Below are positions 1-21,744 of a DNA stretch of 64,000 nucleotides, in pieces. The notes under the pieces are model-generated. The model searched no databases. It worked only from the letters and a program-made list of their open reading frames with translations, and was not told the origin of the DNA. The DNA is taken from the NCBI GenBank assembly GCA_004431415.1, contig QPMI01000117.1:248001-312000 (forward strand). Reading direction: 5' to 3'. Every line of letters starts with the position of its first letter. Within the stretch, counting starts at the first letter, position 1. Made by a program: the position numbers and the translations under genes. This DNA is from Cyanophora paradoxa CCMP329. Its lineage: Eukaryota; Plantae; Glaucophyta.

Positions 1-55
1 CAATGTTGTCTTGCGTGATCTATACGCGCATATAGATCGAGTCAGTGAACAAGTT

Positions 56-786
56 TCACTTTAGATTCAAATACAAGCTATTAAGCTGCACCCTCTCAAG
101 ATCTTTTTCGAGCCTGGCTGCGCGCTTTTCAAGAATGTTTGGAAATTTGAAAGCCGCGCGTCGCTTGGCCGGCTCAAGAACTCTCCTACAATCACCCGCG
201 GCCGGCGCGCCGGCAAGATCTGATGGCGCGGACCCTGCTCCGGTATCTCCTGACGACCTGATCTGCGCGAAAGGTCGCTTTCGGGAGATGCTAACCGCCA
301 CTTTAAGTTTCGACGAATTGCAGACCTCGAGCTCTTTTTCATGATCGGCCTGTAAAGGCTTTTGAGGACCTAGGCCTGACCCCTCCGTTAGAATGGCGCC
401 TCGAGCTCGCGCAAGCGCATCAGAAGGAAATTGGTATTGCCTATGCGACAAATTACAGTTGCAGTTTAGACTTGTAAATGAATACCTGAACTAGCCCTTG
501 TAGTACTTGCACCAGCGCACGTGTACGCATCAGTAGGATCGTGGACATTCCTGATTTCGAAACTGGACGTCGATATGTACAAAATTAGAAGTCGAAAAGT
601 AAAGTGCTGTCTATGCATCCGATTGCAACAGATCAAAGTTTCCGACCTGATAGGGGTGGCAAGTGATAGGACGCCCCTGTCATCATCATAACGAGCTTGT
701 TTATCCTTGGAGTCTGAAGCTTTTTCGCGATCAATCGCATAGTCTCCGCTGCCACCAAGAAACGATCCATGGCCACTCTCTGTCAC
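56..786 (-). CDS. possible exons of an uncharacterised minus-strand gene running off the left edge
   Basis: Two adjacent minus-strand ORFs (466-786, 56-451) with ordinary amino-acid composition; no recognisable motif; exon structure not resolved. Confidence 0.25.
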
Positions 787-1289
787 CGTACGTTGTTAGA
801 GCTGGGGACTTGATAAAAGAGCCACTGACTTGCCGCGCGCGTCAGTTGGGTCCGGGGAAGGGAATTTAATCATGTGAACGGGACTGTTGCACTGCAGTGG
901 CTTGGCATTCACAGCGCGCACAAGACTCGCACAAAATGGGCGGGGGGGCTGCAGTTTGGCAGCCCCGTGCGGGACTGCACTGTCACTGCACGGCCTTGTA
1001 CTTCTTACCGCCCTTGGTGTCCCCGCCCCCACGGCCGTCGCGCGCGTGAGGCCCTGAGGCGCGGCGGCCGCGGGAGCACGGGTGCGCGTGTGCGCGGGTG
1101 TGCGGCTTGCAATTGCCTAGAGCCTCGGAGGCTGGCCTCGAGCTCCGCGCGCGCGCGATCTGCATGCGCGGGCAAGCCTGGGCGCGGGCGCAGGGACACT
1201 GCTCGAGCTCATGATCGATATCACGCTCCGCTCATGATCATGATCAGAAAGCGGCCGGCGCCGGCGGCGGCTGCGCAGCGCTAGCGGGC

Positions 1290-1770
1290 CAGCTCAGCGG
1301 CTAGTGCGACCGGCTTAAGCTTGTGGCCCGCTCGCGCGCGGTTGGAGCGGCTGTGGCGCGCGCGGCGCCGGCTAGCGTCATGATCAGCGCTAGCAGATCT
1401 AGATCTAGCTATAGACTGCCGCGCGCGCGAGAGGCGTGACAGTTCAGATCATCGGCGCGAGAGCGTTGCAATTGAGAGCGCTATCCGATCATCGGATCGC
1501 GAGCTGAAGAGGAAGCGGCCGGATCCCGGCCTGCGTTGCGTCGACGTCGCGCGAGAGGCGTGACAGTTGAAGCCGCGGCCGGCGCAGAGCTGAATTTAAG
1601 AGGAATGCGAGTGCGCTAGTGCGACTGGCTTGTGGCCGAGCTCGGGTGCGTTGACCGTGCACGTGTCGAACCGAGCCGAGCTGTGGCGTGCGCGGCTGGC
1701 GCGCGCGGATAGCGATAGCTGCAGCAGAGTGCAGTTGAGCGCTATCCGATCATCGGATCGCGAGCTGTGC
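1290..1770. repeat. degenerate dispersed direct repeats
   Basis: GCGCTATCCGATCATCGGATCGCGAGCTG at ~1478 and ~1739; CGCGCGAGAGGCGTGACAGTT at ~1424 and ~1548; GCTAGTGCGAC(C/T)GGCTT at ~1300 and ~1615. Confidence 0.6.
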
Positions 1771-2213
1771 GGGGGGGGGGGAAGTGGTAGGGGGGGTCCG
1801 TAAACAGACTTTTGCAGGGTAAGTTAACGCACTCTCCAATGTGATTGGCTAGCGCGCGCGGCTTCCCTCCACGCGACCGCGCTCGCGTCTGGCCTCGCTC
1901 TCGCAGAACGAAATGTCGAGCATGATGCAAGCATCGACCTCGAACTGGTTTGGCCCTTATACCTGCTCCCTGTGCCTCGCTGGACCCCTTTTTGTCCCGG
2001 GTGTTGGTGCCTGTTCCTGGATCACCCTTTGGTCCGTCGGGACCGGGAGACATGGTTTCGGGATCCCCTTGTGATGGGCTTTCAGGATATACCGCGCGGC
2101 CCGGGTTTTGAGGAGGTCGGGGAAATGGGATTTGGGGTAGGGTTGGGCCCAAAGGACAGGGACAGGGGAAGTGTTTTTCCCTTCCCCAATTAGAGCCGTG
2201 AGATCAGAGTAAA

Positions 2214-2594
2214 TTAATATTTACCTGTATCTTCATGTTTGTCTATGCTATTCTCAGTAGTTTTTGCTCTTTTTACACCTCTAGTTTCGCAATTCATCTC
2301 ATGATCGAAGGCAGATGCGTGTTCAGCTGCTGAAGCTGCAGTTGCGCTAATTGGCTCAACGCGCACAACATCAATGGCATTTGATATTGTAGGTTGCGAT
2401 CTTTGTGTTTCGAATTCCCTCCTATCCACGGGTGCCGATGCAGCAGCAGCTGTTGCAGCTGCAGATGCGGCGATATCGATTCCGTTAACGCTGGTATCTG
2501 TAGGCTCGACACGTACAAAGGAGTCCGATGCTGCAGCTGCAGCTGCAGTCCCCACAGCTAGCGCTGCAGATGCCGTTTTTAAATTTGCGCTCAT
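2214..2594 (-). CDS. Ala-rich low-complexity ORF/exon with a repeated VRVEP motif
   Basis: MSANLKTASAALAVGTAAAAAASDSFVRVEP...DVVRVEPISATAASAA in the ORF track; no family match recognised. Confidence 0.25.
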   Translation of the reverse strand: MSANLKTASAALAVGTAAAAAASDSFVRVEPTDTSVNGIDIAASAAATAAAASAPVDRREFETQRSQPTISNAIDVVRVEPISATAASAAEHASAFDHEMNCETRGVKRAKTTENSIDKHEDTGKY

Positions 2595-4209
2595 TGGATC
2601 CGATGATTCCGATTTGGACGTGGGCGCTGCAGCTGCACGTCGAGGAACGGCTGTAATTCTTTTATATTTACCCGGCGCCGGCAGCTGCGGCTGATCGATA
2701 TCGATATCGATATCGCGAACGCGACTGGGGGGTTTGTAGCATGCACGTCCGGTGCCTGCGGTGCCTTTTTTACGCGTCAGGGGAGGCCTGTAGCGCGCGG
2801 TGGCTGCGGGCCGATGCTGACTGGCCGTAAGCGCGGGCGTTGGCACCCCCGAAACTGCTTCATTGGACTGCCGGGGCTGCAGCTGTGAGGTCGAGCCGCT
2901 GCCGATCTCACGTTTGCGTTTTGCTTCAATCTTTGCTCTTAGATCTGTGCATGCGCACAGTTAGTTATAGAAAATATAGAAAATTCAATTTGCACGCAAC
3001 CTGTGCTTTTGTTTGCTGTCGTATGATCATGATTGCTAAGCGTCGCTGGGCGCAAAAGCTTAGAACCCTGATTCCGGGAATCCTGCTGTAACTGCGGCTG
3101 CTGCAATTGTCGCTGCCGTAAAAGCTGCAGCTGCTGCAACTTTAAGTTCGAAAGCTGCGGCGCTGGGGCGCTTGGAACTGTTATTTTGGCTGCGGATGGA
3201 GATCTAGCGATAGAGCTTGCGGGGCTGATAACGGAGGCCGATCGCGATCGCGAGGGCTTGAGGCCGCCGAGCCCGCGGCCGAACATGGGGTGCATCCTCC
3301 GGAGTCCCCACCTCGGGATCGATCTGTGAGTGTGCGTGATCATGATATATAAATATGTAAGAAATCAAGAAGCCTTTGAAGGAGCTCTATATATATACAG
3401 CGCTTGCAATCGTCACGGTTGAACTTCGCGCGGGGGCCGCGGCCGCGGGAGCCTCGGAGGTCTATAGCTATATATATTGAATTCGGGAAGCTAAAACCTA
3501 GTATTCATAAGGTTCGCTTACGACCCTAGCTATGAACTCGATGACGAAGATAATCGAATATAGATATCGGGCTAGCTAGCTATATGTATAGCGCTAGTGC
3601 TGCAGCTGGGTGCACGTGTCGGCGCGAATGCGAGCGCTCGCGGTCGCACCTCAAGCCTTCCAAATCTGTGCAACTCCCAGCTGCAGGAGTTGATGTACGT
3701 CGCCGAGCTCGAGTCGATATCGATTGACCGCGCGCGCCGCGCGCGGCGCCAGCGGCCGGCGCGCGGCCCAGTCGACGGGGCGCGGTTGGAGCTGCGGCCC
3801 GGGCGGGGAACATTAGATAGCTGCGCATGACTACGGTACGCCACGTCCACGTCCGCTAGCGCTGCCCCACGCGCGCGCGTCGGGGATCCGGACCGCGCGC
3901 GCGCGCTGGGCCGGCCGCGCGCGGGACGCGTACGTGAAGGGCGTCGCCTAAATGTCACGCGCGGGGAAGTACTATCTTTCTGATCTGACGATCACCCGCG
4001 CGCGTGCGCCGATCGCCCTCTTAGATCTCTAACAGCCGCCGTACGTACGGCTCTGATCGTACGCACCGGCTCTAACGAGGCCGACGTTCGCGATCCGCGT
4101 GCTCTCAACGGCGTCCTCTCGCCAGCCTTAGCGCTCGAAGGCCTAGAAGTTCAGTGCGGGGGTACACCCGAGAACCGCGACCAGACCGCCCGCCGGCGCC
4201 TCTGAGGCG

Positions 4210-7200
4210 ATGGCGGGCGCCGGCCTGACGTACGAGCGTGCGCTGCGGGCGGTCCGGGCGCGCGCGGAGGGCCAGATCTTCCCCAGAGACGAGGACACCG
4301 TGCGCCGGCCCGCCGCGCGCCCTCGCGCTCGGCAGCCGCATCTCCGCCCTTCCCTCGGTCCTGTACAGGCGGCCTCGTTCCCCGCGAGGCCGGCCGCGCG
4401 TAGCTAATACACCCGAGGCTCCCGAGCTCGAGCGCTAGCTGGAGGCTGCGCGCGGGCCGCCGGCCGAGCGAAGAGACGTGCGCTTACGCCGAGGGCCCTC
4501 CGGCGCAGGAGGCGGGCCTCCCGCTGCACGCGGCGGTCTGCGCGTGGCGGGAGCTTCGGGAGGAGGCGGAGCTCGTCGCCGAGCGCCACGCGGCGGCCCT
4601 CAACTCCGCCGCCGACCGCTACGGATGCCTCGCGCTGTGAGCGGCCGCGCCGCCCCTCCCGGATCGGCGCGCGCTGATCGGCGCTCGGCGGCGGCGGCGG
4701 CGCGGCGCAGGCACCACTGCGCGTACTCGAACGCGCGGGCGGAGGCGGCGCGCTGGCTGCTGGCGCGCGGCGCGGACGTCGACGGGCGGAGCGCCTCGCG
4801 GCGGACGCCGCTCCACGAGTCCGTCGAGAGCGGGTGCGGCCCGAGCGGCCCGAGCCCGGCCCGAGCCCGCCGAGCCGCCCGCCCGGAGCCCGAGCCCGAG
4901 CGCGCGGCGCGGCGGACGGCGCAGGACGCTGGAGGTGGCGCGGGTGCTGCTGGCGGCGGGGCGGACGCGGCGGCCGCCGACGAGGGCGGGAAGCAGCCGC
5001 TCCACCTCGCCTGCCACGGTCCGCCCCGCCCCGCCCCGCCCCGCCCCGCCCGCCCCGCCCCGCCCCGCCCCGCCCGCCCCGACTTCGTTCGCAGGGGACG
5101 CGCCGGAGCTCGTGGGGGCGCTGCTCGACGCGGGGGCCGACGCGCGCGCCGCCGACGCCGACGGCGCCACTCCGCTCCACTTCGCCGCCTACGCCCGCCA
5201 GAAGCCGGCGCGCCGTGATTTGATCTATCCCCCTCCCTCCCGCCCGCCCGCCGGCCCCTGACGCCCCGCCGCCCGCCCGCAGAGGAACCGCGAAGCGCAG
5301 GCACGCGTACCCCTCCCGCCCGCTTTTACACGGGACTGACGGGTACCCCTCACAGGCCGCGATCCTGGCGATCCTCACCAAGAGGGGCCAGATGGGTACG
5401 TGGATCCGTTCCCGGGGTACCGCGCTCCATTCCCACCCGCGCCCCGCAGCCCGGGCCGACTTCGCGCGCTGCACGGCGAGCGGCGCGTCGCCCCTCGGCG
5501 CCGCCGTCCGGTGCGCCGCCGTACCCCCCGAGGCGCGGCCGGCGGAGGGTGACGGCGTACCCGCCAGGCTGGAGCTCGTACCCCTCGTGGAGCAGATGCT
5601 GGCGGCGGGGGCGGACCCGAACGACGGCGAGGCAGGGGGGGAGGCGCGCCCGCACCTGTACGCCGCCCTGAAGGGCTGGCAGGGGGTGCGACCGTACCCC
5701 CCCGACCCGCATTTGAAACTGAAAGGACTTTTTCGAACTGAACTGAATCGACTTTTTTCCAGTTTGGCAACGTTCGAATGGCGAGGGCGCTCGTTGCCGC
5801 CGGAGCGGACTGCTCCCTGTACCCCCCCCCCTTGCCCCCTGTACCCCTCCCGCCCCAGGATTGACGGTACCCCCCGCAGGACGGTCCCCGGGGAGGAGGC
5901 GCCTCTCGCGATCGCGATGGGCGTCGGACGGCGACCTGTGCGCTGTACCCCCCTTCCCTTCCACCCCCCCCTTCTGAGCCCTCCTCCCCAGAGGCAGGAT
6001 GGGGGGGAGGATGGACGGGACTCCTGGCGGGCCCTCGTCGCCGAGGCGCGTACCCCCCCCCACGCCAACTGTACCCCTCAGGACCCGCCTCATCACGCGC
6101 CCCCAGATGATCGATCGGGGCGCCCCCGTCAGCGGCCGGACCCTCGACGGTACCCCCCTTCCCCGCACCTCCTCCTCCTCCCCCCCTCCCCGAGAGTGCC
6201 TGGCAGGGGTGCCCCTGCTGGTGCTGGCGTGCTCGCACGGGATGGGCCCCGCCGTCCTCCGCCGCATGCTCGAGCGCGGCGCCGGTGCGCGCCGTTCCCC
6301 TGCGGCGCGCCCGGCCCCCTCCGGCCCTCTGTCTTACGCCGCGGCAGACGCGAACGAGGGGGACCGGCGGGGCGTGACGCCGCTCGCCGCGGCGGCCGCG
6401 CGCGCCGCCGAGGGGGACCCCTTCCACCAGACCGAGGCGGGCACCCCCGGCCCTTCCCCCCCCACCTCCCCTTCTGTACCCCTCAACTCTGCGGCAGGTC
6501 ATGCGGCTGCTGCTGGATGCGGGGGCCGACCCCAACGCCCGCACCGACGCCGCCTACTACGCCATGGGCGTGCGCCCCTTTCCTTCCCCTCTTACTTTGC
6601 CTACCCTCCGCCCTTACTTTGGGCGCAGGGGGCGGCGGGGGGGGCGCCGCGGGTGCCGCTGGTCTTCGCGTGCGCGGCGCGCGGCACCGCAGAGGGCGTC
6701 CGCCTCCTCCTCGCCCGGTACCCCCCCGGCACCCGGTACCCCTTAAGCTTGCTTGCTGAGGGTCGGGGCCGGGCCGGCGGGCGGGGGCAGCGGGGCGGGG
6801 GCGGGGGCGGTGGACCACGAGGGTTCCTCCCTCCTCCACCTCGCCATCGCCAACGTGCGCTCGGGCCCGCCCCGGCCCCGGCTCGTCGAGCCAAGCCGAG
6901 CCGCGGCCCGCGGCCTAATGAACGGGCGGCAGGGGTGGGAGGAGGTCGCGGAGCTCGTCCTCGGGGCCGGCGTCCCCGTGCGCTGCGCCCGGCCGCCCTC
7001 GCCTTTGAATTCCCGGGCGCGCGGCTCAGCCGTCCCGCCCTATTTTTAGGTGGACGCGGGGGACGGGAAGGGGCGGACGGCCCTCGCCGCCGCGTGCGCC
7101 CGTCGATCCCGACCGCATTTCGTCGATCCCGAACGCATTTCGTCGATCCCGAACGCATTTCGTCGATCCCGAACGCATTTCGTCGATCCCGAACGCATTT

Positions 7201-10200
7201 CGTCGATCCCGAACGAATGCAGGCGGGGGCGGACCCGAACGTCGCGGACGGGGAGGGCGCCACGCCCTTCCTCCTCTGCGCCGAGGCCGGGTGCGCAGGG
7301 CTGTACAGTCCGCTGGAGACCGCCGCCGTGGCCGCCGCCGACTTCGTTCGCAGGTACCTGGAGCTGGCGGAGCTGGTGCTGGGGGCCGGCGCCCGCCCCG
7401 ACGGTGCCTTCCGAATTCCCCGCCCCGGCCCGCCCCGGCCTCTTCCCTTGCCCTTAACGGGGCGGCAGCGGTGGACGGGCGGGGCCGCGGCTTCTTCCAC
7501 TTCATGGCCCGCTTCCGGTGCGAACGAAGTTTCCTCCGGATTCGAAGTCTTCCCCCGCAGGGCTTCTAACTCGAGCCGCGCGGCGCAGGCGCGTGCTGAA
7601 CGAGAGCGACATCGAGGTGCCGCTGATCTGATCTGATCTGATCCGATCTGATCTGATCTGATCTGAGCGCCCCGCGGCGTGCGTGCGCAGGTCTTCGCGG
7701 CGGCGGGGGCGCCCCACGACCTGCGCGACAAGTCCGGCAGCACCCCGCTCCTCGTGCGCCCGTGGCCGGCCCCACGCAAACAATTTTCGATCCCCGCTGA
7801 GCGCACCGCGGCCGGCCTCAGATCGCGTGCGACACGCGGGCGTACGCCCTCGCCAACTGGCTCTACCGCAAGGGGTACCCCCCTCCTTCTCCCTTGCACT
7901 ATTCCCTGTCCTCAGCCCTTGGCCGCAGGGCGGACGTGAACGCGCGGAACGAGGAGGGGGACACCCCCTTCCTCGAGAGCCTCGAGGCCCGCCCCCGCCT
8001 GCCCGCCCCCGCCCGCCTGCCTCTGACCAGCGCGCCCGCCGGCACCGCCCCGGCCGGGCCGCAGGGCTCCTTCAACTCGACGATGGACAACCTTGAGGTC
8101 CTCATGATCAAGGTACCGTCCCGCTCCAGGGGCCTTCCTCCCGCAGGACGCAGGTCGCTCTCTAGGCGGCTCCGTTCTGACGCTCCGGGGATTGCTCTCC
8201 GGCCCGGCGGTCTAGGCCCGGGGATAGCGCTTCCCTCCCTGGCGGCACGGTTCTGACGCTCGGGGAATCGCAGGAGGGGCGGGCGGACCCGCACGCGACG
8301 GCGCCGGACGGGCGCTCGGCCCTCCACCTCGCGGTGGGCCCCGGCCCCTCGCCTCCGTCCCTCCGCGCCCTTGACCCTACTCGAGCTTTCCCGCGCCCAA
8401 CCTCTCCTCGCACATCTAGACTCCACCCGGCCGCGCCCCGAGAGCCTCTCACCCGGCTGAGCCCCCCCGACCCCGGCCCCGCAGCTGGCGAAGGAGAACC
8501 TGGCGGCGTCCGGGGCGCTCGTCGCCCGCGGCGCCGACCCCCTCCGCACCGTCCGCCCGCCCCTCGCAGCACGCCCTGCTCTGCTCTGACCCGAGCCCCC
8601 CGCGCGGGATCGCAGTCGGGGCGGGACGGGGAGACGCCGCTCGCCCTCGCCGCCTCCCGCGGCTACTTGCCCCTCGTCGAGGTGCCCCCCCCCCCCCCCC
8701 CCCCTCCCCCGGCCGCCTCCTGCCAACATTTCCTCATTTCTTGCTCAGGCGATGTGCAAGAGCGTCGCCGCCTCGGGGCGCTCCTCGGGTGCCTCCCCTT
8801 TAGCTTCCCACCTCTTTCCTCCCCTTTGACTTCCCATCCTTGTCCTCTTCCTCTCCTTCCTCTCTGAACCTGGGGACAGAGATCGACGGGCGGCTGGCGG
8901 GCGGCGCGACGGCGCTCCTGGCGGCCGTGCGCGCCGGCCACAGGGGCGTCGCCCAGAGTGCGTGTCTCCTTTATTAAAGGGTGCCCCTTTCATTTGATTC
9001 TGACCCGCCGGACCCGCCGCACGCGCAGCGCTGCACGCGCACGGGGCGAGCGCAGCAGTGGCGGACGAGGAGGGGGAGACGCCCGTCCTCTCCGCCACGC
9101 GGGCGAGCAGCCCGCTCTGTTCTACCTCTTCGTTCCATCTAAAACGGCCTTCGTTCGCGTTTTGCAGACGGCGGCGCGGCACGCAAGGGAGGCGAGGGAG
9201 AGCGAGGTCGTGGACGCCCGGGTACGTCGTAAACCTTTCTCTCGTCTTTTGAATTTGAATTTGAATCTGTTGCTTTGGTGCGCGCGTGCAGGCGGCGGCG
9301 CATGGCGATCAGTTCCACGGGTTCCACGCCCCGCAGCCCCTCGTCGCCCGCCGCAGCACGCTGGACCACGTCGAGCCCGAATCGGCGCCCGTCGCGGTCC
9401 GATCCGCTGCCCTCCGCTCCGCTCGCTTTAATAGTAATTTGCCACGCGATTACGACTGCCCACCGCGCGCAGGCGAGGCAGCCGCGGCTGGCGCCGCTGC
9501 CGCGCTCCGTCAGCGCCGCCACGAGCAAGGAGTGGGCCGAGGCGAAGCGGTGCGGGCCGCGCCCGCGCCATTGGATCGAACAAGCGAACAGTGCCATCGA
9601 CGTCGACTCTGTCATTTCGGACAGGTTCGAGGAGCTGGCGGCGTGGCTGGTCAAGGGCGCCCGGGCCCCGCTCGCCGCCCAGGACGCCGACGGGGTGCGC
9701 CCCTCTGAAATCATTGCTGAGAAAACCGGCGCCTGAGCGGGGCGGGGCTGCGGGGGCAGAACACGGCGCTGCACCTGGCGGTGGGCGGCGGCCTCGTGGA
9801 CCTCGCCAAGGCACACCGGCCTCGCACCACACCGCACCGCTCGCGCCCGTTTCCGTTTTATTTTGACGGGTGCGGCGTGCGCAGGCGATGCTGGTGGCGG
9901 CCGCCGACCCCATGATCACCAACAAGGCCCGCCCTCCCGCCGCCTCCCGGCCGCTCTAGCTCTGAATTAGAAAGGCTCTCTTCTGCGAGCCGCGCTTCAG
10001 AGCTAGGGCGCTTCAGAGCTCTTTGGGCCTCTAGGCGCTTCCAGGCGCTTTGAGAGCCCTCAGCGACCTCTATGGCTAGAAGGGATCTGAGTCTTGGGCC
10101 CTTCTCTGCGAGGCCGCGGCCTCTGATTCCTCCCTGCGCCCGCCCGCGCCTCGCCTCCGCCGCAGGAGGGGAAGACGGCGTTCGAGATGACGGACGACGT

Positions 10201-13200
10201 CCGCCTCCGCTTCGAGCTCAAGGCCCGCCCCCGCCCCGGCCCCGCCCACCTCCATGCACATGACCATGAGCTGAGCGCGGCGCGCAGGCCTCCTCCCAGG
10301 CGCGGGACGTTTTTATAAGGTGCGCCCCGCCCCCTCCTCGCCTTCGGTCCTATATGGGTCCGCCTGCGCCTAGAGCGTTCGCTGACAGGGCGCGCGCGCG
10401 CGCGCGCAGCTACGCGCACAAGCCGCCCGAGATCGCCGAGTTCGCCACGCGCCTCCGGTGCGACTGCCGACGAAAGGAGCCGGAAACCTGTAATCCGTCT
10501 CGCGTTTCTAACATGCGCCCCCGCCCGGCCCGGCGCGCCCCGCCCGGCGCGCCGCAGGGACGCGCTGGAGGCGCGGCACCTCTCCTGCTGGCTCGACCAG
10601 ATGAAGCCCTCCGGTGCGCTCCCTGATCGTGATCTGAGCTTCCTTCTCTTTGGCTGAGCGGCGGGGCGGGGCGGGGCGGGGCAGGGATCGCGGCGGGGAC
10701 GGAGTGGCGGCAGGAGATCGGGCGCGGCATCCGCGCTTCCTGCGCCGTCGTCTTCGTCGCCAGGCGCCGACCTCGCACGCTCCTTTGAATCGTGCGCCTG
10801 CGCCTGACGCTCCGCAGCACGCACTCGTGCTCCTCGGAGTGGTGCAAGTGCGCCGCCCCGGCCCGGCCCGCCGCCCGACCCTTGGCTTCCCATTCTCGCT
10901 CCCGTCTGAGCGTCAACGGACAGGCGGGAGCTGGCGCTGGCACGGGCGCTGGGGCGCCCCATCCTCCCCGTCTGGCGCGAGCTCGTGCCCCTCGACGAGG
11001 AGGCCCGCCCCGCCGCCCCCGCGAACCCGCACGCCCTCGCCTTGCAGAGGCCTTTAACCTATGCGTCGCAGATGAAGAGCTACCTGTGGAAGACCCAGTT
11101 TGCGTGCGCCCCGACCCGCGCCGCCCCGCCCACCTGACGAATTGACCCGAACTGACGAGCGTGCATGGCCTCGAACCCTTAGTGACTTCACGAAGGTCTG
11201 TGCTTCTCGATCGGCAGGACCCGATCTGACCCGATCGGCCCCGCCGGCCGCGGGCAGGACGCGGGGTTCCAGCCGGCGCTCGACTCGCTCGCCTCGACCC
11301 TCGGCGACATCGTTGGCCGCGAGAAGGTTCTTTTGCGAGCTTTACAATCCATCAGAAACGAATCTTATATATATATTACTCTTTCTTGTCAGGCTGCGCG
11401 GGACGCGGCGGAGGCGAGCGAGGCGGCCGGGGCGGCCGCGGGCGGCCCCGGTGGTGTACATGTCGGGGAGGAGGAGGAGGAGCGGCGGGCGGCGGAGGGG
11501 GCGCCGATCGTGGACCCGACGCGGGACGGGGACGACGCGCCGCCCTTCCTCGTCGTCTGCCACGCCGGCAGGTGACCGTAGCTAATCTCTCAGCTTGAAC
11601 TCACTCTAAAGTTTCACCCTTTCCATCCAACTCGTTTGCGGGGCAGGGAGCCCTTGACCTAATCTCTCGGGCTTGAACTCTTAAACCCCAATCCTTCCAT
11701 CTAACGAAGTTTTGTGCACGAAGTCGACAGGTCTACTACCTAAGCCTTTACCTCAGCTCTAAGCTTACACTCTTAAAGCCCCACTCCTTCCATCTAAAGA
11801 GTTTTGTGCGGCAGGGAGCCCGGGTTCGCGGGGCGGCTGGCGCGGGGCCTGCGGGCCGGGGGCGTCGCCTGCTGGCTCGACGCCGCCCCCGACGAGGAGG
11901 AGGGGCAGGGGGAGGGAGGGCGCGGCGCGGGGGAGGGGGGAGGAGGCGGCGGGGCCGGCGGGGCGGGGGCGCGGGCCATCGGGCACCCCAAGTGCGCGGG
12001 GCTCGTCCCCGTCCTCAGGTGCCGCCTCCGATTCCCCTTCGATAATTTCCGATCCCGTTCTAATTCTTCCTCCTGCCGTTTTTACACCTAATTCCGCTCT
12101 TGTCTCTAATTCCGTTCGCTTTTTCGTTCTCATTCCGTCCTTAGGTGCCGATTCTCATTCCCTCATTCCCTCTCTGCAACCGCTGCGCACCTGCCGGCCT
12201 CTCCTTGACTCGCATCCCTCGTCCCTCCGCCCGTGCCGGGGCCGCCCCCGCAGCGCGCGGACGATCGGGAGCGACGCGCTGCGCGACCGCTGCGCCCTCG
12301 CCGAGGACGCCGGCCCGCCCCGCGCCGCGCCGCCCCGCCGCCCTCTCTGTCGCCCAAGCTCGGCTCACTGAGCTCCCTTCGGGTCGCCTTGCTCGCAGGC
12401 CTGCCCCTCTTCCCTGCCCTCCTCGCCGAGGCCCGCCCTCCCTCCACTTCCCCTCGGGCCGCGCCCTTTAGATCTCCCCTGAGCGGATTGTGCGGCAGCT
12501 GGGGGGCGGGGCGGAGGCGGACGCGCTGGCGTACTCGCTGGCGCGGGCGCCCTCCCTCTCCTTCACCGACCTCTTCGGGTTCCCCCGGTCCGCCCCCCCG
12601 CCCGCCCGTCCGCTTAAGAAAGTCTCGATCCGGCAAAGGCCTCGCACGGCGCTCCTTGAGCCCGCGCCCGCTGACGGCGCCCCGGCTCGCCCGCAGGGAC
12701 CTGGACCGGCTTGTGGAGGAGATCCGGCGGGGCGCCCCCGCCGCCGCCCGCCCCGGCGGTGCGCGCGGAACATGGGACGGCTCGTTGAGGGCTGTCAGGC
12801 TCAGCCAGGTCGCAGGGGAGCCCGTCGTTGCGGCGGCGCCCCTGGCGCGGCCCGCGGGGCCGGGGGCGCCTGCAGCTGGCGGGCACGGATCCGCGGCCGT
12901 GGCAGGGGCCGCGGGCACTGCAGGCGGGGCGGACGAGGCGGCGTCGCTCCGGGCAGAGGCGAGCGAGCGCTTTAGATCTGTACATTCGCATCCCGTCTGA
13001 CGGCGCCGCTTCAGGTGGAGCGGCTGAGGCGGCAGGTCGCTCAGCTGCGGGCGGAGAACTCCGCCCTCCGCTCCGCATCCGCCGCCTCGAGCTCCGGACC
13101 CGCTCCCGCAGCCGCGGCGCCGGCCGCGGCACCGCGCTCGGCGCCGGGGCTCGCGGCGAAAACCGCGGGGGGGGGAATGAAGCCGGGGGAGCGGCGGCAA

Positions 13201-13275
13201 AGCGACGGGGGAGCCCCCGTTGCGACGTCGACGTCGACGTCGTCGAGTAAGACATCGGTCTGCTCTGTACAATGA
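4210..13275 (+). CDS. multi-exon ankyrin-repeat / TIR / degenerate TIR / coiled-coil / CaaX protein
   Basis: Spliced exons give many ankyrin motifs (WLLARGADVDGRSASRRTPLH, LLDAGADARAADADGATPLHFAA, AGADPNVADGEGATPFLLC, ADVNARNEEGDTPF, GETPLALAASRGYLPLVE, EGKTAFEM); TIR at 10.3-11.0 kb; second TIR-like unit at 11.5-12.6 kb; VERLRRQVAQLRAENSALR coiled coil; ends SKTSVCSVQ* at 13275. One apparent -1 frameshift near 4960. Confidence 0.85.
7101..7215. repeat. 20-bp minisatellite in an intron (5 full copies plus a partial)
   Basis: CGTCGATCCCGAACGCATTT tandem, between donor GTGCGC (7094) and acceptor GCAG (7222). Confidence 0.95.
7623..7666. repeat. (CTGAT)n microsatellite in an intron
   Basis: About 8 tandem CTGAT/CCGAT units. 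Confidence 0.9.
10303..11002 (+). other. TIR domain 1 (TIR_2-type), catalytic Glu retained
   Basis: Spliced: RDVFISYAHKPPEIAEFATRLRDALEARHLSCWLDQMKPSGIAAGTEWRQEIGRGIRASCAVVFVASTHSCSSEWCKRELALARALGRPILPVWRE; box1 FISY and WCxxEL motif. Confidence 0.9.
11540..12590 (+). other. TIR domain 2, degenerate (no catalytic Glu)
   Basis: Spliced: PFLVVCHAGREPGFAGRLARGLRAGGVACWLD...AIGHPKCAGLVPVLSARTIGSDALRDRCALAEDAGLPLFPALL; aligns with TIR1 but SEWCKREL is SDALRDRC. Confidence 0.7.
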
Positions 13276-14834
13276 GGTTTTGAATGAATGTATTAGCCTT
13301 CAAAGTATTTCTTAGTATATATATATATACGTACTACGGTAGTCTTTAAATTTGGCGTGGGGATGGAAGAGAAATATATATGCCGCGCGTATATATATAC
13401 GTGTGCGACCATCCGACCGGCTCCTGGTATACTTCTCAACCTCTTCGAGCTTTCGAAAGTTTGCTGTCCTGCTGACGTCGACCACATTCGGGCGTTCTTC
13501 AAGGCTTGATCTGGGCGGCCAAGGTTCTGAATGCATACCCAGACGCTCCTAAATCGTGAAGCTTCTGGAACACGATCTACTCCAGTGCAGTATCTGATTG
13601 CATTCCCGTCGACATCGTGAATTTAAGCTTGTATTTGAACAGTATATCTCCCCCTTTTCTGTAATTTTCTCGCTCATCGATTCGAAATGATACACATGTT
13701 TTTTTCCCATCAACTTGTTCCTGATGCAACATCCCCCCGGGTCCACATTCACCCCTCACGAGCCCCACCCCTGCTCCTGAAGCAAATCTGTGTGACAGGT
13801 CGTAGCGACTTTGAGGCACCACGTGCTATGACAGGTCGTAGCGACTTTGAGATCTAGGCCCTGGATACGTACTAGATCAATGAAATACGGACCGGATGCC
13901 GCCACCCCTGCTTAATTATAAATATAACCGTTGAACTAGGTCTTCAACGTCGACTCGCCCCCGCCCCCGCTCGTCTCAGGAGGTGCAAGGTGGGGTCTAA
14001 AGTTGGGGCGTTGACAGAATACACCAACTAAATAATGCTCAGCGGCTATCTTCTAGATCTACGCTCGCTAGGCGTAGGCCTGGGCCTGCGCGCAGCGCCG
14101 CCCAGCGGCCGCCCTTGAAGCCTACGATGGAGAGGAGTAACGTCCTGGTGGTCGCGGTTGGCGACCCTTGCCCGGTTCGCGTGCGCGCGCGAGGGACCGG
14201 CATGGGCGCGCGCGGGCCCGATCGAGCGGGCGGGGCCGGCTGGAAGGCTGTTCGATCGCACACTTAGCTACCTGCGACTGAGGCTGAAGGCCGGCAGCGA
14301 CTGCTGGCGCGCGGATTGCTAGAACCGATACGCTTGCCCGCTGGGAGGCGTGGCGGCTTGGGGAGGTTTTCGGACACGCTTCGGAGTCTCTGCGGGGGCC
14401 CACCGGTCGCCGCTATCCCGCGCGCCCTACTCTACGCTCCCGGCGTGCTCCCAGGGGGGTACCTCTCTAGTTCCCGGCAATTATTGCCTTGCAATTGAAG
14501 CTACCGGGTAACTTAAGCTGGAAGCTAAAGCCAATTTCCATTACTACTACCAGTACCGTTGAACATTCGCGCTTCGAAATTAAATTCGACTTGGCCGGCG
14601 CCTTCATGATCAAGGCTTGTCCGTCAAAACTTGACTCAAAGGGTCGATTGACCAAATTTTTTGTGAAGTCAATCGCGAGAAAGAGCCTTAGACGCTGCTA
14701 AGACGCATGGCTGTCAAAAGCCTGTCGACGCGTACGTCATGCATGATCAGTGCCTGTCACGCACGCGTACGTGACGGCGGTGACGCAGCTGCCGCAGTGC
14801 CAGCTGAGTCACAGGCACTCCGGGCACTGCTAGC

Positions 14835-15326
14835 TAGGGCTGGGTTCAGTCACTGTCAGTCAAAGTCAGAGGGTCTGACTGACCCGACTGAGTCACCAAA
14901 TTGGCCGACTGAGGTTCTCTCAGTCCCATACAAAACCCTGCTGGGAGCGTGCCCCCCTGTGGGCTTTTTCCATCTGAAGCTCGACGTGGATCGATCTAAA
15001 AAGGATCTTCTGTCGTCTTACCTCCAGAAAAACAACGAAATCTGAACGAAACCGCCCGCGCTAGCGAGGCTAACGGGGGCCGAATTCCTTTCACCCAGTG
15101 TTCTTATAAGCTTTGCTCGCCTGATCTCTCCCTAGTAGTCCCTACTGCCCGCGCACTGTGCAGTCTGTGCTTGGCAACTTAGATGGATCGCATCTGGGTC
15201 ATTTCCGGGTCATTTTCCTCAGTTTTTGCACGGTAGCCTGACTGAACCTCAGGTTGACTGATTCAGTCACAGTCAGGGGGGCTGAGCGACTGGGTCAGGG
15301 GTGGAGCCTGACTGAACCCAGCACTA
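14835..15326. mobile_element. non-autonomous hAT element (MITE)
   Basis: TIRs TAGGGCTGGGTTCAGTCA / TGACTGAACCCAGCACTA; perfect 8-bp TSD CTGCTAGC (14827-14834, 15327-15334); subterminal AGTCA/TGACT repeats. Confidence 0.9.
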
Positions 15327-15383
15327 CTGCTAGCTGACAGCTGCAGCCTGTGACAGGCTGTGCGCGCACTCTCTAGTTAAGTA

Positions 15384-15737
15384 CTGTAAACGTAGAAAAG
15401 TTCGTCACGGCGTCGAGTTTCAATTTCGACAAAACCCGAAAATCATTTTGAATCGTGACGAAAATATGGTTCGACAGCATCATAATTTCGTCAGCCCCGC
15501 GACTCCGCCATAGACGACGTCTATTTCGTCTATATTCGTCAGACCTGCACTTTGACGAATATTTGATACTCTTGAACGGGATTTTTGTATGGAGAAGGGT
15601 ATACTAGCGGCTGACCCGTCTATGGCGAAGTCGCGGGGTTGACGAAAATATGATGCTGGCGAACCATATGCATATTTTCGTCACGATTTTCAGGTTTTGT
15701 CGAAATTAAGTCTCGACGAACTTTCCTACGTTTACAG
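15384..15737. mobile_element. Tc1/mariner-type MITE with long (~130 bp) imperfect TIRs
   Basis: TA|CTGTAAACGTAG...CTACGTTTACAG|TA; arms ~15384-15518 and ~15617-15737. Confidence 0.85.
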
Positions 15738-15929
15738 TATATAGGAATCATAATACTATGATAATAGGATACGGCCAGACCGGGCCCGGGGTCACAGCTG
15801 CAGTGTACACGTTGCGGCCGGCCGCGGGCAGACTGCGCATGCAGCCTGATGATGCAGGCTGCAGCCTGCGGGCTGCAGCTGCATGCATATGGGCATGCGC
15901 ATTGTTTTTGCGCAGGCACTGCGGCAGGC

Positions 15930-16170
15930 TACTACCGTCGGGCACTAAATTACTGCGGCGTTAATTAACGCGGTTTCGAAAATGGCCCTCCTCTGAGCGA
16001 AATACCGCGGTACTAAATTAACGCGGTTTTAAATCTTTGAGGCTTGTATGGGGCAGTAATTTTAGGGGGTACTGTATTGGGCGATTTTTCAGCAGCAAAT
16101 TACCGCGGCACCAAATTAACACGTTTTAACAAACTTTTGCGCGTTAATTTGGTACCGCGTTAGTTAAGTG
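15930..16170. mobile_element. truncated copy of the pogo-like MITE at 22.7 kb
   Basis: Colinear with 22731-22970 (TACTACCGT..GGCACTAAATTA, TTGAGGCTTGTATGGGGC, AATTACCGCGG repeats); right TIR missing. Confidence 0.8.
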
Positions 16171-16495
16171 GCTAGTACTACTAGGCTAGCAGCCCGCTAG
16201 CTTAGTATTATACCGGTATACCGTAGTACGCGATACGTACTACGGTACGGTAGTAGCTGGCTAGGCCTAGGCTAGCAGCTGCAGCGCACTGCAGTGGGGG
16301 TGACTGCACTTGGCACTGCAGTCACTGAGTGCCAGCCTGGCACTGCGGCAGTGCACCGATTCAGCAACCCTCGGACGCAGCGATCGCGACGCCGCGCCCC
16401 AGGCGCTGAGCACGAGCGGCGTATACTACGCCGTAGAGCTAACGTACTCTTGCCCCCGGCATCCTTGCACTCGCCCCGGCGATACGAGGCTAAAG

Positions 16496-17803
16496 ATGGG
16501 CTCCACTACTTCCCGCTGCATGTAGCTACTCTCGATTGATGAAACCTGCCCGCGTCAAGTTCGGGAGACGCTCGTTCGCAGGTCGAAATATGAGGAGGTT
16601 GAGGTGGAAGCTACATATTACACTCCTCGAAATATAAGCAAGGTGTGCGGAGGAACCGTCATAAATGAGTGGAAAACAGCAAAAAGAGATCACGTGCCCA
16701 CGGATCAAGAGAAATACCGGTGCGTGCAGGAGCCACCGCCGAACAGATCTGCATGCAAGTATCGTAAATTGCGAACTCTGAACAGGTGCATGAAGGCCGG
16801 CGGAAAGGGCATCCTTTCCATAACCTACGATCACGGCTCGAGCTCGCCAACGGGCTCGACTTGTTATGTGCGCGAATCCAGTGATTTGAAACGAGTTTTC
16901 ATCTGCCTGCACGACATCGATATCGATAAGCCGTGATTGCAATCATGCGCAGGACACACGCGCTGCGAAACCCGAGATTAAATCCTACTTATCTTCGACG
17001 TGCATGTGCGACACTCGGCAGCAAGCGGTGGCATGGGCACTTGCATGACGCGTTGCATATGCGCATTCGCGCACATTTGCAGGTCCAAGTCCTGCTGCAA
17101 TGGAACGGAACTCATGAAATGGGATGGAAAAGCCACGAAGGAGATGGAAGTCGAGTGAGCTAGCTGAAATCTCTTGCAATTGGCGTCACACACGGCGTTG
17201 TGCAAACCACCGAACAGATGCAAAAAAGCCGGCGGCAAGTCCCTCGACGAAGTAGCCTTGGATATTGATAACGGGACCTTTTCTAGTTGCATTTACCTGG
17301 TGCGCATACGTCGCATCTATGTCCGGCAGCCGCTGAGCGCCTTTTAATTTTACGGCTGATCGTGAATTGCAATCTTGTTCCGTTGAACCGGTGAATTAAC
17401 TTTCGAACATGTGCGCATGTGCATGCTCTTTCTGCGCATATATATAATTATAATTCGCAATTCTAAACGTAATGGGAGCCTTCTGTTGAGCGCAGGAAGC
17501 TCGATTTCAAGCTGAGCGATGCTAAACGCATTGACGAACCCGTGCAATTGCAAGGTGCGCATTGCTGGCTGTACTACAGTAGTACCACTTGCAGATCACC
17601 TCATATGCATTCTCGCCCGCGTAACCCACGCTTTGTTTTGCGCACCGGCAGCCGCTGAGGAAGACATATGCATGTACAAGGACGCGGAGGTCGAGGGCTT
17701 CGAGGCGGACGAGGAGCTGGACGCGGAGCTGTACGGCCTCACCGGCGGCGCCGGCGCGGAGGAGTTCGGAGCCGAGGCCCCCGCCCCCGAGCTGCAGGCC
17801 TAG
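16496..17803 (+). CDS. multi-exon Cys-module protein A (two CxKAGG repeats) with acidic tail
   Basis: Exons ...SKVCGGTVINEW...EKYR|CMKAGGKG...STCY, SKSCCNGTELMKW...|CKKAGGKS...SSCIY, and a last exon DAEVEGFEADEELDAELYGLTGGAGAEEFGAEAPAPELQA*; start codon uncertain. Confidence 0.55.
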
Positions 17804-19837
17804 GCCCAGGCTCGAGGCCGAGCCGTGCGGGCAAGTGCAAGGACCTCGGCCTGTACTCTACGCATCCAGGCAACGTTGGCGGCATAGCGATAGCTCCAGT
17901 GCAGGCAAACGCAGCTGTCTACATCTTAGTTTGCTAACTAATTCAATGATTACTGCGGGTTGGATACGGATCGGGAGTTGGGCGCGGGGCCGGGCCGAGG
18001 GGGGCGGCCGGGACCCATGCATATGGCCATGGCGCCCACTGGCGGGGCGGGGGCCTACTCGGGCTCTGCGCATGCAGGGCGCGACTACGGGGGGGGAAGG
18101 GGGTGTCCATGGCGACTAAGGCGGGGCCGCGGGGGCGGGGGGGCCGACTAATTATAAGGGAAAGATTATTATTCTGGACGATTTGGCTTCATAAACTTGA
18201 GAGAAGCAATCATTGAATTGGCGCAAGAGTGAAGCATTTAGTGTGCGATATGATGCCTCTGAATACATTTTTGATGTTCACTATCGCGCGGATTCTGTAC
18301 GAGATTTTCCTACATGTACAGCTACGTATACGGCCATTCGAATTCGAAGATCTAGAGGAAAACCTTTATAAGAGGCCAGTTTCGCGGCGAGCAAGTCGGG
18401 CAAGCAGTGCGCCCGGCCGGCGTTGACGTCGTCTTCGTGCCCCAGCGTCGAGTCCCCGGCGGGCCTTAAGCTGCATTGGGATCGTACGCGGCGGGCTGCG
18501 GCCCGGTGCGCGCACGTGCGTCGTGGATCGGAGGGCGTGACCTTAAGCTTGATAAGGCTCTTCGACGGGGCGCGCAGCGCCGATCGCGATGGCGATGTGG
18601 TGATGTCTTCGTTTCGACCGTCCGACGGTCGGACCTCACTGAGTCACCGCGTTTCCCGTGATTTATAAGCTTCCTCCACCTCCGTCTCCGCCTCCGCCTC
18701 ATGATCAGCTGCAGCCTTCGTCACAGTGGGTCAGGTGCACGTGGTCGACACGTACTCGCGCACTCTGCGGCGGCCGTAGTGCTGGGGTACCGCGCGTTCG
18801 AATTCGACCGCGAGCTTCGCGTCGCCGACATGATCATGATCCCGGTACCCCCTCCGCCGCTTCTCACCCCGCCCCCCTCCGCCCAGCCGACGCCGCCCCA
18901 GAACCGGCTCCGTGGCTCGAGGGCGCGATTCGATCGCTCGGCGTCCGTCCTCGGGTCCAACCGATGATCCCTTCCACACCGGCCATCCAGGCCCGCCCGC
19001 AGCCATACCCCTCTCCGCCCCGCCCCGCGCCCCGCCCCACCCGCGCCCCAGGCCTGCCCCGCCCAATGCCCCCCACCCTCGCCAAATCAAAGAAAGGCAC
19101 CTCGGGCTGCATTGGCTGCGGGAGGAGGCGCCCGCCGATCGCGAGGCGCGCCTCGAGCGAACCACCGAACTCCGCGGCCATGTTTCTAGAACCAGCAAGA
19201 GGGCATCTAGGACCGTGTAGCTCATCATGCCACGCCTCCTACTCAACGCCCGGCGCGTATTATATGGTCTGGGCGTGATCTGGACGGCTTCAGCTTCAGC
19301 GACAGCTCGACCACGACAACAAGCTGAAGATCCGATTTTGCCCTTATCCTCCTGTAGCTCGGTTTGGCCTCCATAGTCGCGCCCCGCATGTGCCACGGTG
19401 CAGAGCACGAGAGAAGCCCCTGCACCCCCCCCCCGCCCCCCCCCCCCCCCCCGCCCCCCCCCTCCCTCCCCTCCCCCCATGGCCAGTGGCCGTGGGCGCC
19501 AGGGTCCCGGCCGCCCCCTCGGCCCGGCCCCGCGCCCGACTCCCGACCCGTATCCAACCCGCGGCCGCAGTAATCATTGAATTAGTCAGCAAACTAAGAT
19601 GTAGGCAGCTGCGTTTGCCTGCGCTGGAGCTATCACTATGCCGCCAACGTCTGGATGCGTAGAGTACAGGCTGAGGTCCTTGCAATTGCCCGCACGGCTC
19701 GGCCTCGGGCCTGGGCCTAGGCCTGCAGCTCGGGGGCGGGGGCCTCGGCTCCGAACTCCGCGCCGGCGCCGCCGGTGAGGCCGTACAGCTCCGCGTCCAG
19801 CTCCTCGTCCGCCTCGAAGCCCTCGACCTCCGCGTCC
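17678..19837. repeat. inverted repeat, arms ~17678-18016 and ~19503-19837
   Basis: The last coding exon and 3' flank of gene A is the near-exact reverse complement of 19503-19837. Confidence 0.95.
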
Positions 19838-20510
19838 TCCCCGGCGGCCGCGTCTTCGTCCGAGCACGTGCAATTCACTAAGGGGAATCGCACTCGTGAG
19901 TTGCATATTTAATGAAACTCGAAAAGCTCAGCGGCTTATGATGTTAGAGCGTGCGAGCACCTGAAACGTCTGGTCGCACGTTGATGGAAGGTTCATACAA
20001 GCTTTGCAATCTCGTGCGTTCCAGATCCTTCATATATACCGCGGTGCGCATGCATATATGCGCACGAGAAACACGAGTTATGCTCATTATATTTCTTATG
20101 AGTCAACGTGGGCGAGGACTGTACCGCGACTGGGACTAGGCATTCGTCCTCGCATTCCTCGACGAATTGTGAACGTCCGTCGACGTAAACATTCAAGGTA
20201 CGGCAGTAGTGCTGGTGGACGGAATGGCCGCCGGCTTTCAGGCACCTGTACATGTCCGGAGCCACATGCATGTTAGTAACTTTGTAAGAACTCGAGATGG
20301 CGTGCGCGTTGAAGACGCATGCGCACTGCCATGCTCTCTCATCGTTATTTTTGAATTCTGATCCGAACAAACCCCTGACGTCTGATCCGAGGCAATTGAC
20401 CCCCGACCTAGAGGCTTGTCAGGCACGCGCAGCTAAAGCTGCATGCGCAGGGCGCATATATATATATACCTGCACTGCACGTCCCAACTGGCGCCAACAA
20501 CGCGTGCCAT
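19718..20510 (-). CDS. multi-exon Cys-module protein B, paralog of A
   Basis: MARVVGASWDVQCR|SGVNCLGSDV...AWQ|CLKAGGHS...; same acidic last exon as A; ATG context CTAAAGATGG shared with A. Confidence 0.55.
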
Positions 20511-20739
20511 CTTTAGATGTTACGTATTATATAACGTATACGAAGTTTAGCTGTAGCCTTGAAGCCCCGAAAATGGCAAGCTATAGCCCACTGGCCAGTA
20601 GCAGACTCTAGATCTGAGAGCGTTGCCAGCTGCACTGCGGCAGGCTCTGACAGCGTCTGAGAGACTACTAGGGCTATATACTATGATAGCTAGCGCCAGC
20701 AGCGCTTCGAATTCGAAGGCAGCGCTTCCGTAGGCTACG

Positions 20740-21540
20740 GGTAGACTTGGCCGGCCCGGACAAGCGCTTGGCCACTTGCAATTGGCCGGGTCAAGCACTT
20801 GGCCCGGCTTGAGGCAAGCCGAAGTGGGGGTACACTTCTGCAAGCCCTCAGCGCCGCAGCGAAATGCTAGCGCTATAGCTATAGCTTATTTTGCTTTGAA
20901 TTCGAAAGAAACACATCTAAACACTGATCATGAGCTGCTAATACATATCGACTCGGCAAGCTTCCGCGCGCGGAGCTCGCGACGCTGGCCGTCGACGTCG
21001 GCGCGATATCGATGATCATCGGATACGTATATACCTGCACGCTCTTCATGATCAGACCTCTAGATCTACGATCGATCGCCATGCTAGATCTACCGACGTT
21101 CGCGCGCGATGCCATCGATCGCAGGCACGCGCGCGCGCGTGCCGCGCCGGCTTCGAATTCGCTGCAGCTGCGTCGAAGTACCCCGCGCGCCGATCCCCCC
21201 CCCCCCCCCCCCCCCCCCGGGGCCAGGGCTTGAGCCGGCTTGAGTCGGCCAAAAGCCGGTCAAGCGCTTGGCCGCCCAGCCCGGAGCACCTGCCGAGAGT
21301 TATTCGTATATTGCCGAGAGGCCGAATTCGGCAATTTCGTATATTGCCGAGCTCGAGAGGCCGAATTCGGCAATTTTAAGCCACGGCAATTCTCAGGGGG
21401 TAGGGCTAAACGACCGATGTTGTATGGCGCCATAGAAGAAATCCAGAGTTTCGGCAATTTATCGCCACGGCAATTCCGGTTTTGGTCGAATTCGGAAATT
21501 TAACTACACGGCAATTTAAGCATTAATTCCTACAGTACCG
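20740..21540. mobile_element. probable decayed MITE fragments
   Basis: Clustered CAAGCGCTTGGCC/GGCTTGAG repeats (20750-20820, 21225-21280) and repeated CGGCAATT motifs (21290-21520) ending ...CTACAGTA; no clean TIR/TSD pair. Confidence 0.4.
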
Positions 21541-21744
21541 GCCGCGGTAGCCTAGTACTGTTAGACACAGTCACTGAGTGTTACTACTAACTTACTAGTA
21601 CGGTAGTAGTACCAAGGTCCAAGCCTTTGAAGGGTAGACCCGGGTAGTACATGCACTGTGATGCACATTCGATGATTGCACACTGGTACTGTGGTACACT
21701 GAGCAGTGAGCAGTCACTGCCAGCCTGTGCCAGGCAGTGCCAGC

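Follow-up and report, generated by a model that had tools for sequence, protein, structure and literature searches.

The 64,000-nucleotide stretch of the Cyanophora paradoxa CCMP329 genome analyzed here (contig QPMI01000117.1, positions 248,001 to 312,000 of the forward strand; referred to as the window) carries on its plus strand, between positions 4210 and 13275, what is most likely a single nuclear and intron-rich gene that the public BRAKER/AUGUSTUS annotation has cut into the two models g1125 and g1126. The predicted product contains an ankyrin-repeat array, a TIR domain with the catalytic signature of enzymes that cleave nicotinamide adenine dinucleotide (NAD+), here called TIR1, a second and degenerate TIR (TIR2), a short leucine zipper and the CaaX-type terminus CSVQ. 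We hold this explanation as a whole, including the mechanism proposed below, with moderate confidence. The inferred gene was assembled from the exact mapping of the two public models (P0001 and P0122) and comprises 57 exons with 4362 nt of coding sequence, which would encode 1453 aa; the introns range from 54 to 243 nt. A check of frame and stops showed that the merged 57-exon chain is open up to the CSVQ-stop and free of internal stops.

The locus stands out by its guanine plus cytosine (GC) content, which is 0.69-0.76 over 4-12 kb of the window and about 0.55 on either side. Long open reading frames of the bacterial type that make sense are absent, and the coding sequence consists of many short pieces with changing frames. 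The two adjacent EukProt models of Cyanophora paradoxa both match the window at 100%. The first, tig00000459_g1125.t1 (P0001, 956 aa, ankyrin only), maps to 4210-9956 of the plus strand in 39 exons separated by introns of 54-161 nt, and the second, tig00000459_g1126.t1 (P0122, 421 aa), which starts with MTDDVRLRFELKASSQARDVFISY and ends with KTSVCSVQ, maps exactly to 10187-13272 of the same strand in 16 exons. The bounds given in the first-pass annotation are exactly the positions at which g1125 begins with its ATG (4210) and g1126 ends with its stop (13275), and the TIR1 exons read by hand are the same as those in the mapped g1126. When a stop-free piece of 552 aa was used for a word search, the only matches were two local public models, g1125 and g1131. 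GC donors instead of GT occur in 5 of the 38 introns of P0001; in both models together GC-AG introns amount to 11 of 53 (21%), and four accepted introns among them start with GCCCGCCC. Apart from one outlier of 801 nt, the 52 other introns of the two models measure 54-161 nt (median 71 nt). The accepted exons show a GC content of 0.75-0.79, 0.58-0.61 and 0.90-0.95 at the three codon positions. These features agree with the published genome, for which a GC content of 67.6% and abundant short introns with a mean of 86 bp were described (PMC6704402). The public models were generated by BRAKER1/AUGUSTUS with guidance by RNA sequencing (RNA-seq), and the authors of the genome state that the gene models 'will require additional manual curation' (PMC6704402).

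The N-terminal region and the ankyrin-repeat array extend from 4210 to 9926 (plus strand) and correspond to exons 1-38 of g1125 together with exon 39, which we trimmed to a GC donor at 9927. Pfam analysis of P0001 identified Ank_2 with an E-value of 3.3e-55 in 9 stretches and PF00023 in 12 separate stretches, that is, ankyrin repeats in tandem, and the long array seen in the first-pass annotation was thereby recovered. A word search with P0001 yielded generic ankyrin proteins with 24-38% identity and provided no paralogs and no information on the architecture. The last full Pfam repeat comprises aa 914-946 and ends with ...AADPMITNK; past ...ITNK the public g1125 model reads into ARPPAASRPL followed by a stop. 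Two tandem repeats lie within this part of the gene. A 20-nt unit is present 5.8 times with 98% matches at 7101-7215, where it overlaps the end of exon 19 (7050-7121) and fills the next intron; in open frames it produces a repeated pseudo-peptide, which could mislead a reader. The other one, a perfect-looking (CTGAT) repeat with 8.8 copies, is located inside an intron at 7623-7666.

Directly after ...ITNK (9926) the sequence continues with GCCCGCCCT, which recurs unchanged as the accepted GC donor at 12431. A strong acceptor, CCTCCGCCGCAG, is found 239 nt downstream of this donor at 10165, and the annotated stop of g1125 (TAG, 9957-9959) falls inside the proposed GC-AG intron between them (9927-10165, plus strand, 239 nt). 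The context of the 9927 donor is similar to that of the donor of the next exon (direct repeat D8). Joining 9926 to 10166 connects phase 0 with phase 0 and leaves the frame open and in phase with g1126. The junction exon EGKTAFEMTDDVRLRFELK (10166-10222, plus strand) includes the public start of g1126 as an internal ATG at 10187, and the part upstream of this ATG is open, in frame and has G or C at 7 of 7 third positions. Across the join the protein would read ADPMITNK-EGKTAFEMTDD, which corresponds to the hairpin and the first helix of one further ankyrin repeat; the G-x-T-A-F of the junction exon fits the hairpin pattern G-x-T-[PA]-[LF], which occurs 12 times in P0001. The distance between the stop of g1125 and the ATG of g1126 is 227 nt, against an average of 770 bp between genes in the genome of Cyanophora paradoxa (PMC6704402). 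With 0.64-0.67 the GC content of this gap is intron-like, and the gap lacks an AT-rich stretch of the kind that directly follows the stop at 13275. Because of the in-frame GC-AG join, the completed ankyrin hairpin, the 227-nt gap and its intron-like GC content, we infer that g1125 and g1126 are one gene, and we consider this quite probable.

The annotation as it stands would mean two genes, an ankyrin-only g1125 and a g1126 with the order TIR-(TIR)-zipper-CaaX that starts at the ATG at 10187. Several observations at the junction count for this arrangement and weigh against a single gene: g1126 has its own ATG, g1125 has its own in-frame stop, and the RNA-seq-guided public annotation (BRAKER1, PMC6704402) splits the locus at this place and also shows the exon-skipping intron of 801 nt further downstream, both of which could reflect real transcripts or isoforms. 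In addition, the introns that we added or altered (239, 243 and 235 nt) exceed all accepted introns of the gene, including the one that joins the two models; thus all three sites of disagreement with the public models have introns of 235-243 nt. However, an independent g1125 would end in Pro/Ala-rich sequence just beyond a perfect donor of the family-type GC class, and an independent g1126 would start 21 nt downstream of a strong acceptor from which the frame is open and in phase and an ankyrin hairpin is completed. The gap between them would be merely 227 nt long, of intron-like GC content and without an AT-rich stretch as found 3' of 13275, and the same annotation overlooked an exon 1.6 kb downstream that is clearly coding. 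Taking both sides into account, we regard two separate genes as improbable and continue with the joined gene.

TIR1 is encoded by nine exons between 10288 and 11326 of the plus strand (10288-10319, 10410-10457, 10558-10613, 10685-10763, 10818-10847, 10924-11002, 11072-11103, 11183-11195 and 11258-11326). The splicing of the public g1126 model yields both motifs reported by the first-pass annotation, DVFISY with codons from 10306 and SEWCKREL with the Trp at 10840-10842 and the catalytic Glu (GAG) at 10928-10930. With P0122 as query, Pfam reports TIR_2 (PF13676) at aa 20-141 with an E-value of 4.6e-21 and 76 bits, compared with a cut-off of 28. When stop-free pieces from the TIR region were submitted one by one, Pfam gave no match, because the exons are too short. 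The best solved relatives by sequence match in the PDB are PdTIR (3h16) and the NAD+ hydrolase AbTIR (7uwg/8g83), and SEWCKREL aligns with kkdWtnyEL of AbTIR, which places a Trp and the catalytic Glu at the corresponding positions. When TIR1 was aligned with eight TIR_2 proteins that show 30-38% identity (A1), F-I-S-Y-A, one Ser, the Glu of helix C and one Ala proved invariant. An AlphaFold (AF2) model calculated from A1 reached a predicted local distance difference test score (pLDDT) of 88.2 and a predicted template modeling score (pTM) of 0.84. Using this model, Foldseek returned as best matches AbTIR with a substrate analogue (7uxu) and the TIRs of SARM1, RPP1, RPS4 and SPARTA; for AbTIR, SARM1, RPP1 and SPARTA the probability was 1.00 and the template modeling (TM) score 0.65-0.76, in agreement with a TIR fold. 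TIR1 is an ordinary TIR_2 domain in which the catalytic signature of NAD+-cleaving TIRs is complete, and its activity is predicted from these residues.

An exhaustive search with one 75-aa piece of TIR1 (10910-11134) found only its own model P0122, and a word search with residues 1-215 of P0122 identified only TIR_2 proteins of the bacterial type with 30-37% identity. The nearest non-self TIR by motif is P0126, a Logan-derived protein of 302 aa, which has SEWCKREL and QYADFTK in common with TIR1. The homology over QYADFTK supports the public 13-nt exon ADFTK. This exon also resolved an alternative acceptor at 11048 and a phase clash after exon 11072-11103. The remainder of P0126 consists of sequence of an AT-rich type and contains no ankyrin repeats.

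The second TIR becomes readable only when exons skipped in the public model are restored. An acidic, Ala/Glu-rich linker exon (11393-11571, plus strand, exon 11 of the public g1126) ends in strand A of TIR2 with PFLVVCHAG, which starts at 11543. The public model then continues with the 801-nt intron 11572-12372, and strongly coding exons are located inside this intron. The first of them (11815-12018, plus strand) encodes helix A and strand B (FAGRLARGLRAGGVACWLD), a Gly/Glu-rich loop and strand C, and the second (12254-12312, plus strand) encodes helix C (SARTIGSDALRDRCALAEDA-G). Strand D follows with (G)LPLFPALLAE in an exon at 12399-12430 (plus strand), for which the public model has an earlier start at 12373 after a GAG acceptor. 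The rest of TIR2 (LGGGAEADALAYSLARAPSLSFTDLFGFPR, DLDRLVEEIRRG...) is encoded by exons 12499-12587 and 12697-12758 of the plus strand, which are exons 13-14 of the public model.

Exon 11815-12018 is the best supported of the restored pieces. Its GC content is 0.85, whereas the flanks have 0.48 and 0.58, and the values at the three codon positions (0.90/0.69/0.955) are like those of accepted exons. A local alignment of its FAGRLARGLRAGGVACWLD with FATRLRDALEARHLSCWLD of TIR1 scored 50, a value reached by none of 2000 shuffles, and hhalign matched the exon to columns 17-39 of the TIR profile A1 with an E-value of 4.3e-5. In a six-frame window scan with a TIR hidden Markov model (HMM) it was the fourth best match, behind three TIR1 exons. 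On the DNA level it has a 33-nt repeat with 76% identity in common with a TIR1 exon (direct repeat D5), and the same annotation pipeline treated its homologue in the paralog model P0002 as coding. Exon 12254-12312 is bounded by the acceptor CCGCCCCCGCAG and the donor GCCCGCCCC, has G or C at 20 of 20 third positions and shows no differences over 19 codons to a second copy in the window, described below as copy B. Other ends for the exon starting at 12254 were considered and rejected: they gave poor donors, introns of 32-50 nt or a helix C misaligned with TIR1. For the strand D exon, the acceptor CCTTGCTCGCAG at 12398 results in an 86-nt intron with fitting phases and a GGC junction codon; the public entry 26 nt earlier uses the sole GAG acceptor among the 53 introns.

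With these three exons restored, the helix C-strand D segment of TIR2 (SDALRDRCALAEDAGLPLFPALL) aligns without gaps with that of TIR1 (SEWCKRELALARALGRPILPVWREL). The position of the catalytic Glu is occupied by Arg (CGC, 12288-12290), as claimed in the first-pass annotation, and the Trp position by Ala (12276-12278); the Arg was read in an ungapped match of SDALRDRCALAEDAGLPLFP with SEWCKRELALARALGRPILP. A collinear chain of all six TIR2 exon pieces against TIR1 reached a z-score of 3.1, which was matched by 0 of 300 shuffles. Two findings speak against this assignment: the pieces other than helix A-strand B are weak and individually non-significant in comparison with TIR1, and single TIR2 exons gave no match in Pfam. 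The region of the BB loop consists of about 30 residues of Gly/Glu-rich low complexity. We read TIR2 as a copy of TIR1 that arose by an old internal duplication and turned into a pseudo-enzyme, with a proposed splice pattern and a putative TIR fold; it would be a pseudo-enzyme provided that it folds as a TIR. The intron that precedes the first restored exon (11572-11814, GC content 0.48) contains a tandem duplication of about 92 nt, in which an acceptor-like motif is found twice, as TTTGCGGGGCAGGGAGCCC at 11635 and as TTTGTGCGGCAGGGAGCCC at 11803.

An active TIR1 is not the only way to read these domains. If the gene is one unit, its TIRs may still be non-enzymatic assembly or adaptor modules, comparable to those of animal TLR/MyD88 signaling or to some bacterial TIR mimics, or they may have a role outside immunity, such as NAD homeostasis or the control of stress or cell death. 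Many proteins use TIR folds as scaffolds, and catalysis is not proven by conservation of the Glu; moreover, the catalytic site is clearly lost in TIR2, and a neighboring gene for a partner that might act downstream of a TIR signal was not found in the window, where the flanking pieces gave no informative Pfam match. On the other hand, TIR1 has kept FISYA, S-x-W and the catalytic Glu as its closest relatives have, and its best matches in sequence and structure, AbTIR, SARM1, RPP1 and SPARTA, are proven NADases. We consider a non-enzymatic or non-immune role unlikely and prefer a catalytic TIR1.

The tail after TIR2 comprises 142 residues and is rich in Ala, Gly, Ser and Pro. It contains four xLRxxxx heptads, preceded by a disordered Ala/Gly/Pro segment, and ends with ...SSSKTSVCSVQ-stop. 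The heptads, which correspond to the short coiled coil of the first-pass annotation, form a putative leucine zipper (SLRAEVE RLRRQVA QLRAENS ALRSASA) encoded at 12944-12958 and 13015-13083 of the plus strand, with an intron at 12959-13014 between them. In Pfam this segment gave weak matches to ZapB, bZIP, TSC22 and DivIC with E-values of about 0.1. A last intron of 35 nt was rejected as too short, and the 56-nt GC-AG intron of the public model was preferred. The gene ends at 13261-13275 (plus strand) with TGC TCT GTA CAA TGA, which encodes the CSVQ terminus named in the first-pass annotation and places a Cys fourth from the C-terminus, as in a CaaX motif. Val at position a2 and Gln at position X are consistent with the preferences of farnesyltransferase, and the yeast protein Ydj1, which ends with CASQ, is farnesylated. 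Less favorable for a lipid anchor is the Ser at position a1, which is not aliphatic. Likewise, a polybasic stretch or a second Cys was not found near CSVQ, so that any hold on the membrane would be weak or need partners.

A truncated and inverted duplicate of the gene (copy B; tig00000459_g1131.t1, P0002, 524 aa) was identified with blastn and tblastn at 26352-29552 of the minus strand, 13 kb away and convergent with the gene. In this copy the front half of the ankyrin array is fused to TIR2 exons by a deletion of about 5 kb, and no counterpart exists of the rear repeats of the array, of TIR1, of the zipper or of the CaaX end. By blastn, 88-93% identity is retained over blocks equivalent to 4197-6325, 6524-6810, 11830-12163 and 12243-12427; the similarity begins 13 nt 5' of the ATG and ends at the close of exon 12399-12430. 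The two copies differ by 4.5% in exons and by 6.6% outside of exons. The differences are distributed 14/14/32 over the three codon positions and copy B contains no stops, which indicates that some constraint or gene conversion persists.

Such a truncated copy at a distance of 13 kb could suggest that the gene itself is a decaying or unexpressed member of its family, a pseudogene or a gene that exists in the annotation only, and the protein searches returned no transcript-derived protein of the gene among their matches. This is difficult to reconcile with a chain of 57 exons and 4362 nt that is open throughout, with a GC content at third codon positions (GC3) of 0.90-0.95 within a normal codon-position pattern, with intact catalytic motifs and with the bias of the differences between the copies towards third positions. 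We consider a decayed gene very improbable and retain an intact one.

The six-frame TIR-HMM scan of the 64 kb detected no TIR besides TIR1, TIR2 and copy B's fragment of TIR2, and no head-to-head partner gene with a complementary TIR status was found in the 64-kb window. The flanks (1-4200 and 13300-26350) have a much lower GC content of 0.53-0.62, and a GC3 of at least 0.85 occurs there in a single piece of 63 aa; apart from this piece, neither the 4.2 kb upstream nor the 13 kb downstream contain a strongly coding stretch of the GC3 type of this gene. Pfam gave no informative match for ten candidate coding pieces in the flanks.

The bacterial TIR_2 NADases AbTIR of Acinetobacter baumannii (7uwg, 7uxu, 8g83) and PdTIR (3h16) are the closest known proteins to TIR1 in sequence and structure. 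They resemble it in strand A (FIS[YH]A), the position of the BB loop, the S-x-W...E of helix C and strand D (ILP[VI]W). They differ in that they are small and mostly TIR-only or coiled-coil-TIR proteins, which have no ankyrin repeats, no degenerate second TIR and no CaaX end, and the identity is limited to 24-38%. SARM1, with the order ARM-SAM-SAM-TIR, also places helical repeats before an NAD+-cleaving TIR and possesses an oligomerization module, and its TIR is among the top fold matches; whereas SARM1 uses ARM and SAM, the Cyanophora protein has ankyrin repeats, a short zipper towards the C-terminus as candidate oligomerizer, TIRs in tandem and an end of the prenylation type. Plant TIR-type receptors with nucleotide-binding and leucine-rich-repeat domains (NLRs) and paired NLRs such as RPS4/RRS1 likewise combine a TIR enzyme with a repeat sensor and include the idea of an active together with an inactive TIR, and their TIRs match in fold; they contain NB-ARC and LRR, in contrast to the active and inactive TIR in a single chain proposed here. 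Pfam detected no NB-ARC, LRR, SAM or ARM in P0001 or P0122, and the protein is therefore neither a TIR-NLR nor a SARM1 homolog. In oomycetes, ankyrin repeat-TIR proteins are listed as uncharacterized (Lapin et al. 2022, PMC9153377). These are alike, by description only, as a fusion of ankyrin and TIR in a microbial eukaryote, and the review mentions no pseudo-TIR, no zipper and no CaaX end.

In our literature search we found neither a publication about Cyanophora TIR proteins nor a description of a TIR that is prenylated. The view of the first-pass annotation that the architecture is uncharacterized thus holds within the literature searched, with the restriction that oomycete ankyrin-TIR proteins have been listed (PMC9153377) and that both halves of the gene are present in the public gene set. 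Its interpretation was upheld as far as the order of the ankyrin array, a TIR with Glu, a TIR-like domain with Arg, a zipper and a CaaX end is concerned, for which Pfam, PDB, fold and exon-level tests provide support. All modules are collinear within an open chain and would probably reside in one transcript and one protein; the public annotation shows two genes. The parts are ordinary. What is undescribed is their combination: one chain with ankyrin repeats, both a live and a dead TIR, a zipper and a CaaX end.

An immune receptor in which the ankyrin array is the sensor, TIR1 the enzyme, TIR2 a scaffold or inhibitor and the C-terminus a membrane tether fits the residues found. By analogy with SARM1, AbTIR and the TIR enzymes of plants and bacteria, the array of ankyrin repeats would bind a ligand or hold the protein in an off state. 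The zipper and TIR-TIR contacts would bring TIR1 domains together, with TIR2 acting as a non-catalytic partner or as a brake, and the assembled TIR1 might then cleave NAD+ or produce a signal of the ADP-ribose (ADPR) type. Farnesylation of CSVQ would place these events at a membrane.

For the Cyanophora gene set, the analysis means that the public models at this locus need correction: two genes are probably to be merged and three exons to be restored or re-cut. Surveys based on the public models would score one 'ankyrin only' and one 'TIR only' protein and would miss both the fusion and the second TIR. NAD+-cleaving TIR enzymes are an immune tool common to bacteria, plants and animals, and to our knowledge almost nothing is known about how microbial eukaryotes deploy them. 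The partner surface of TIR enzymes is normally provided by a second molecule. As a speculation to which we assign a low probability, a glaucophyte, which belongs to a deep branch of the plant supergroup, may possess an NLR-independent, lipid-anchored TIR receptor in which the live and the dead TIR form an asymmetric pair within one chain, the partner surface is either offered or blocked by the dead TIR, and a ligand bound by the ankyrin array switches on NAD+-derived signaling at the membrane. The protein would be a natural case for studying the role of a dead TIR beside a live one, and it would represent a compact, NLR-free coupling of sensing to membrane TIR signaling in an early-branching relative of plants.

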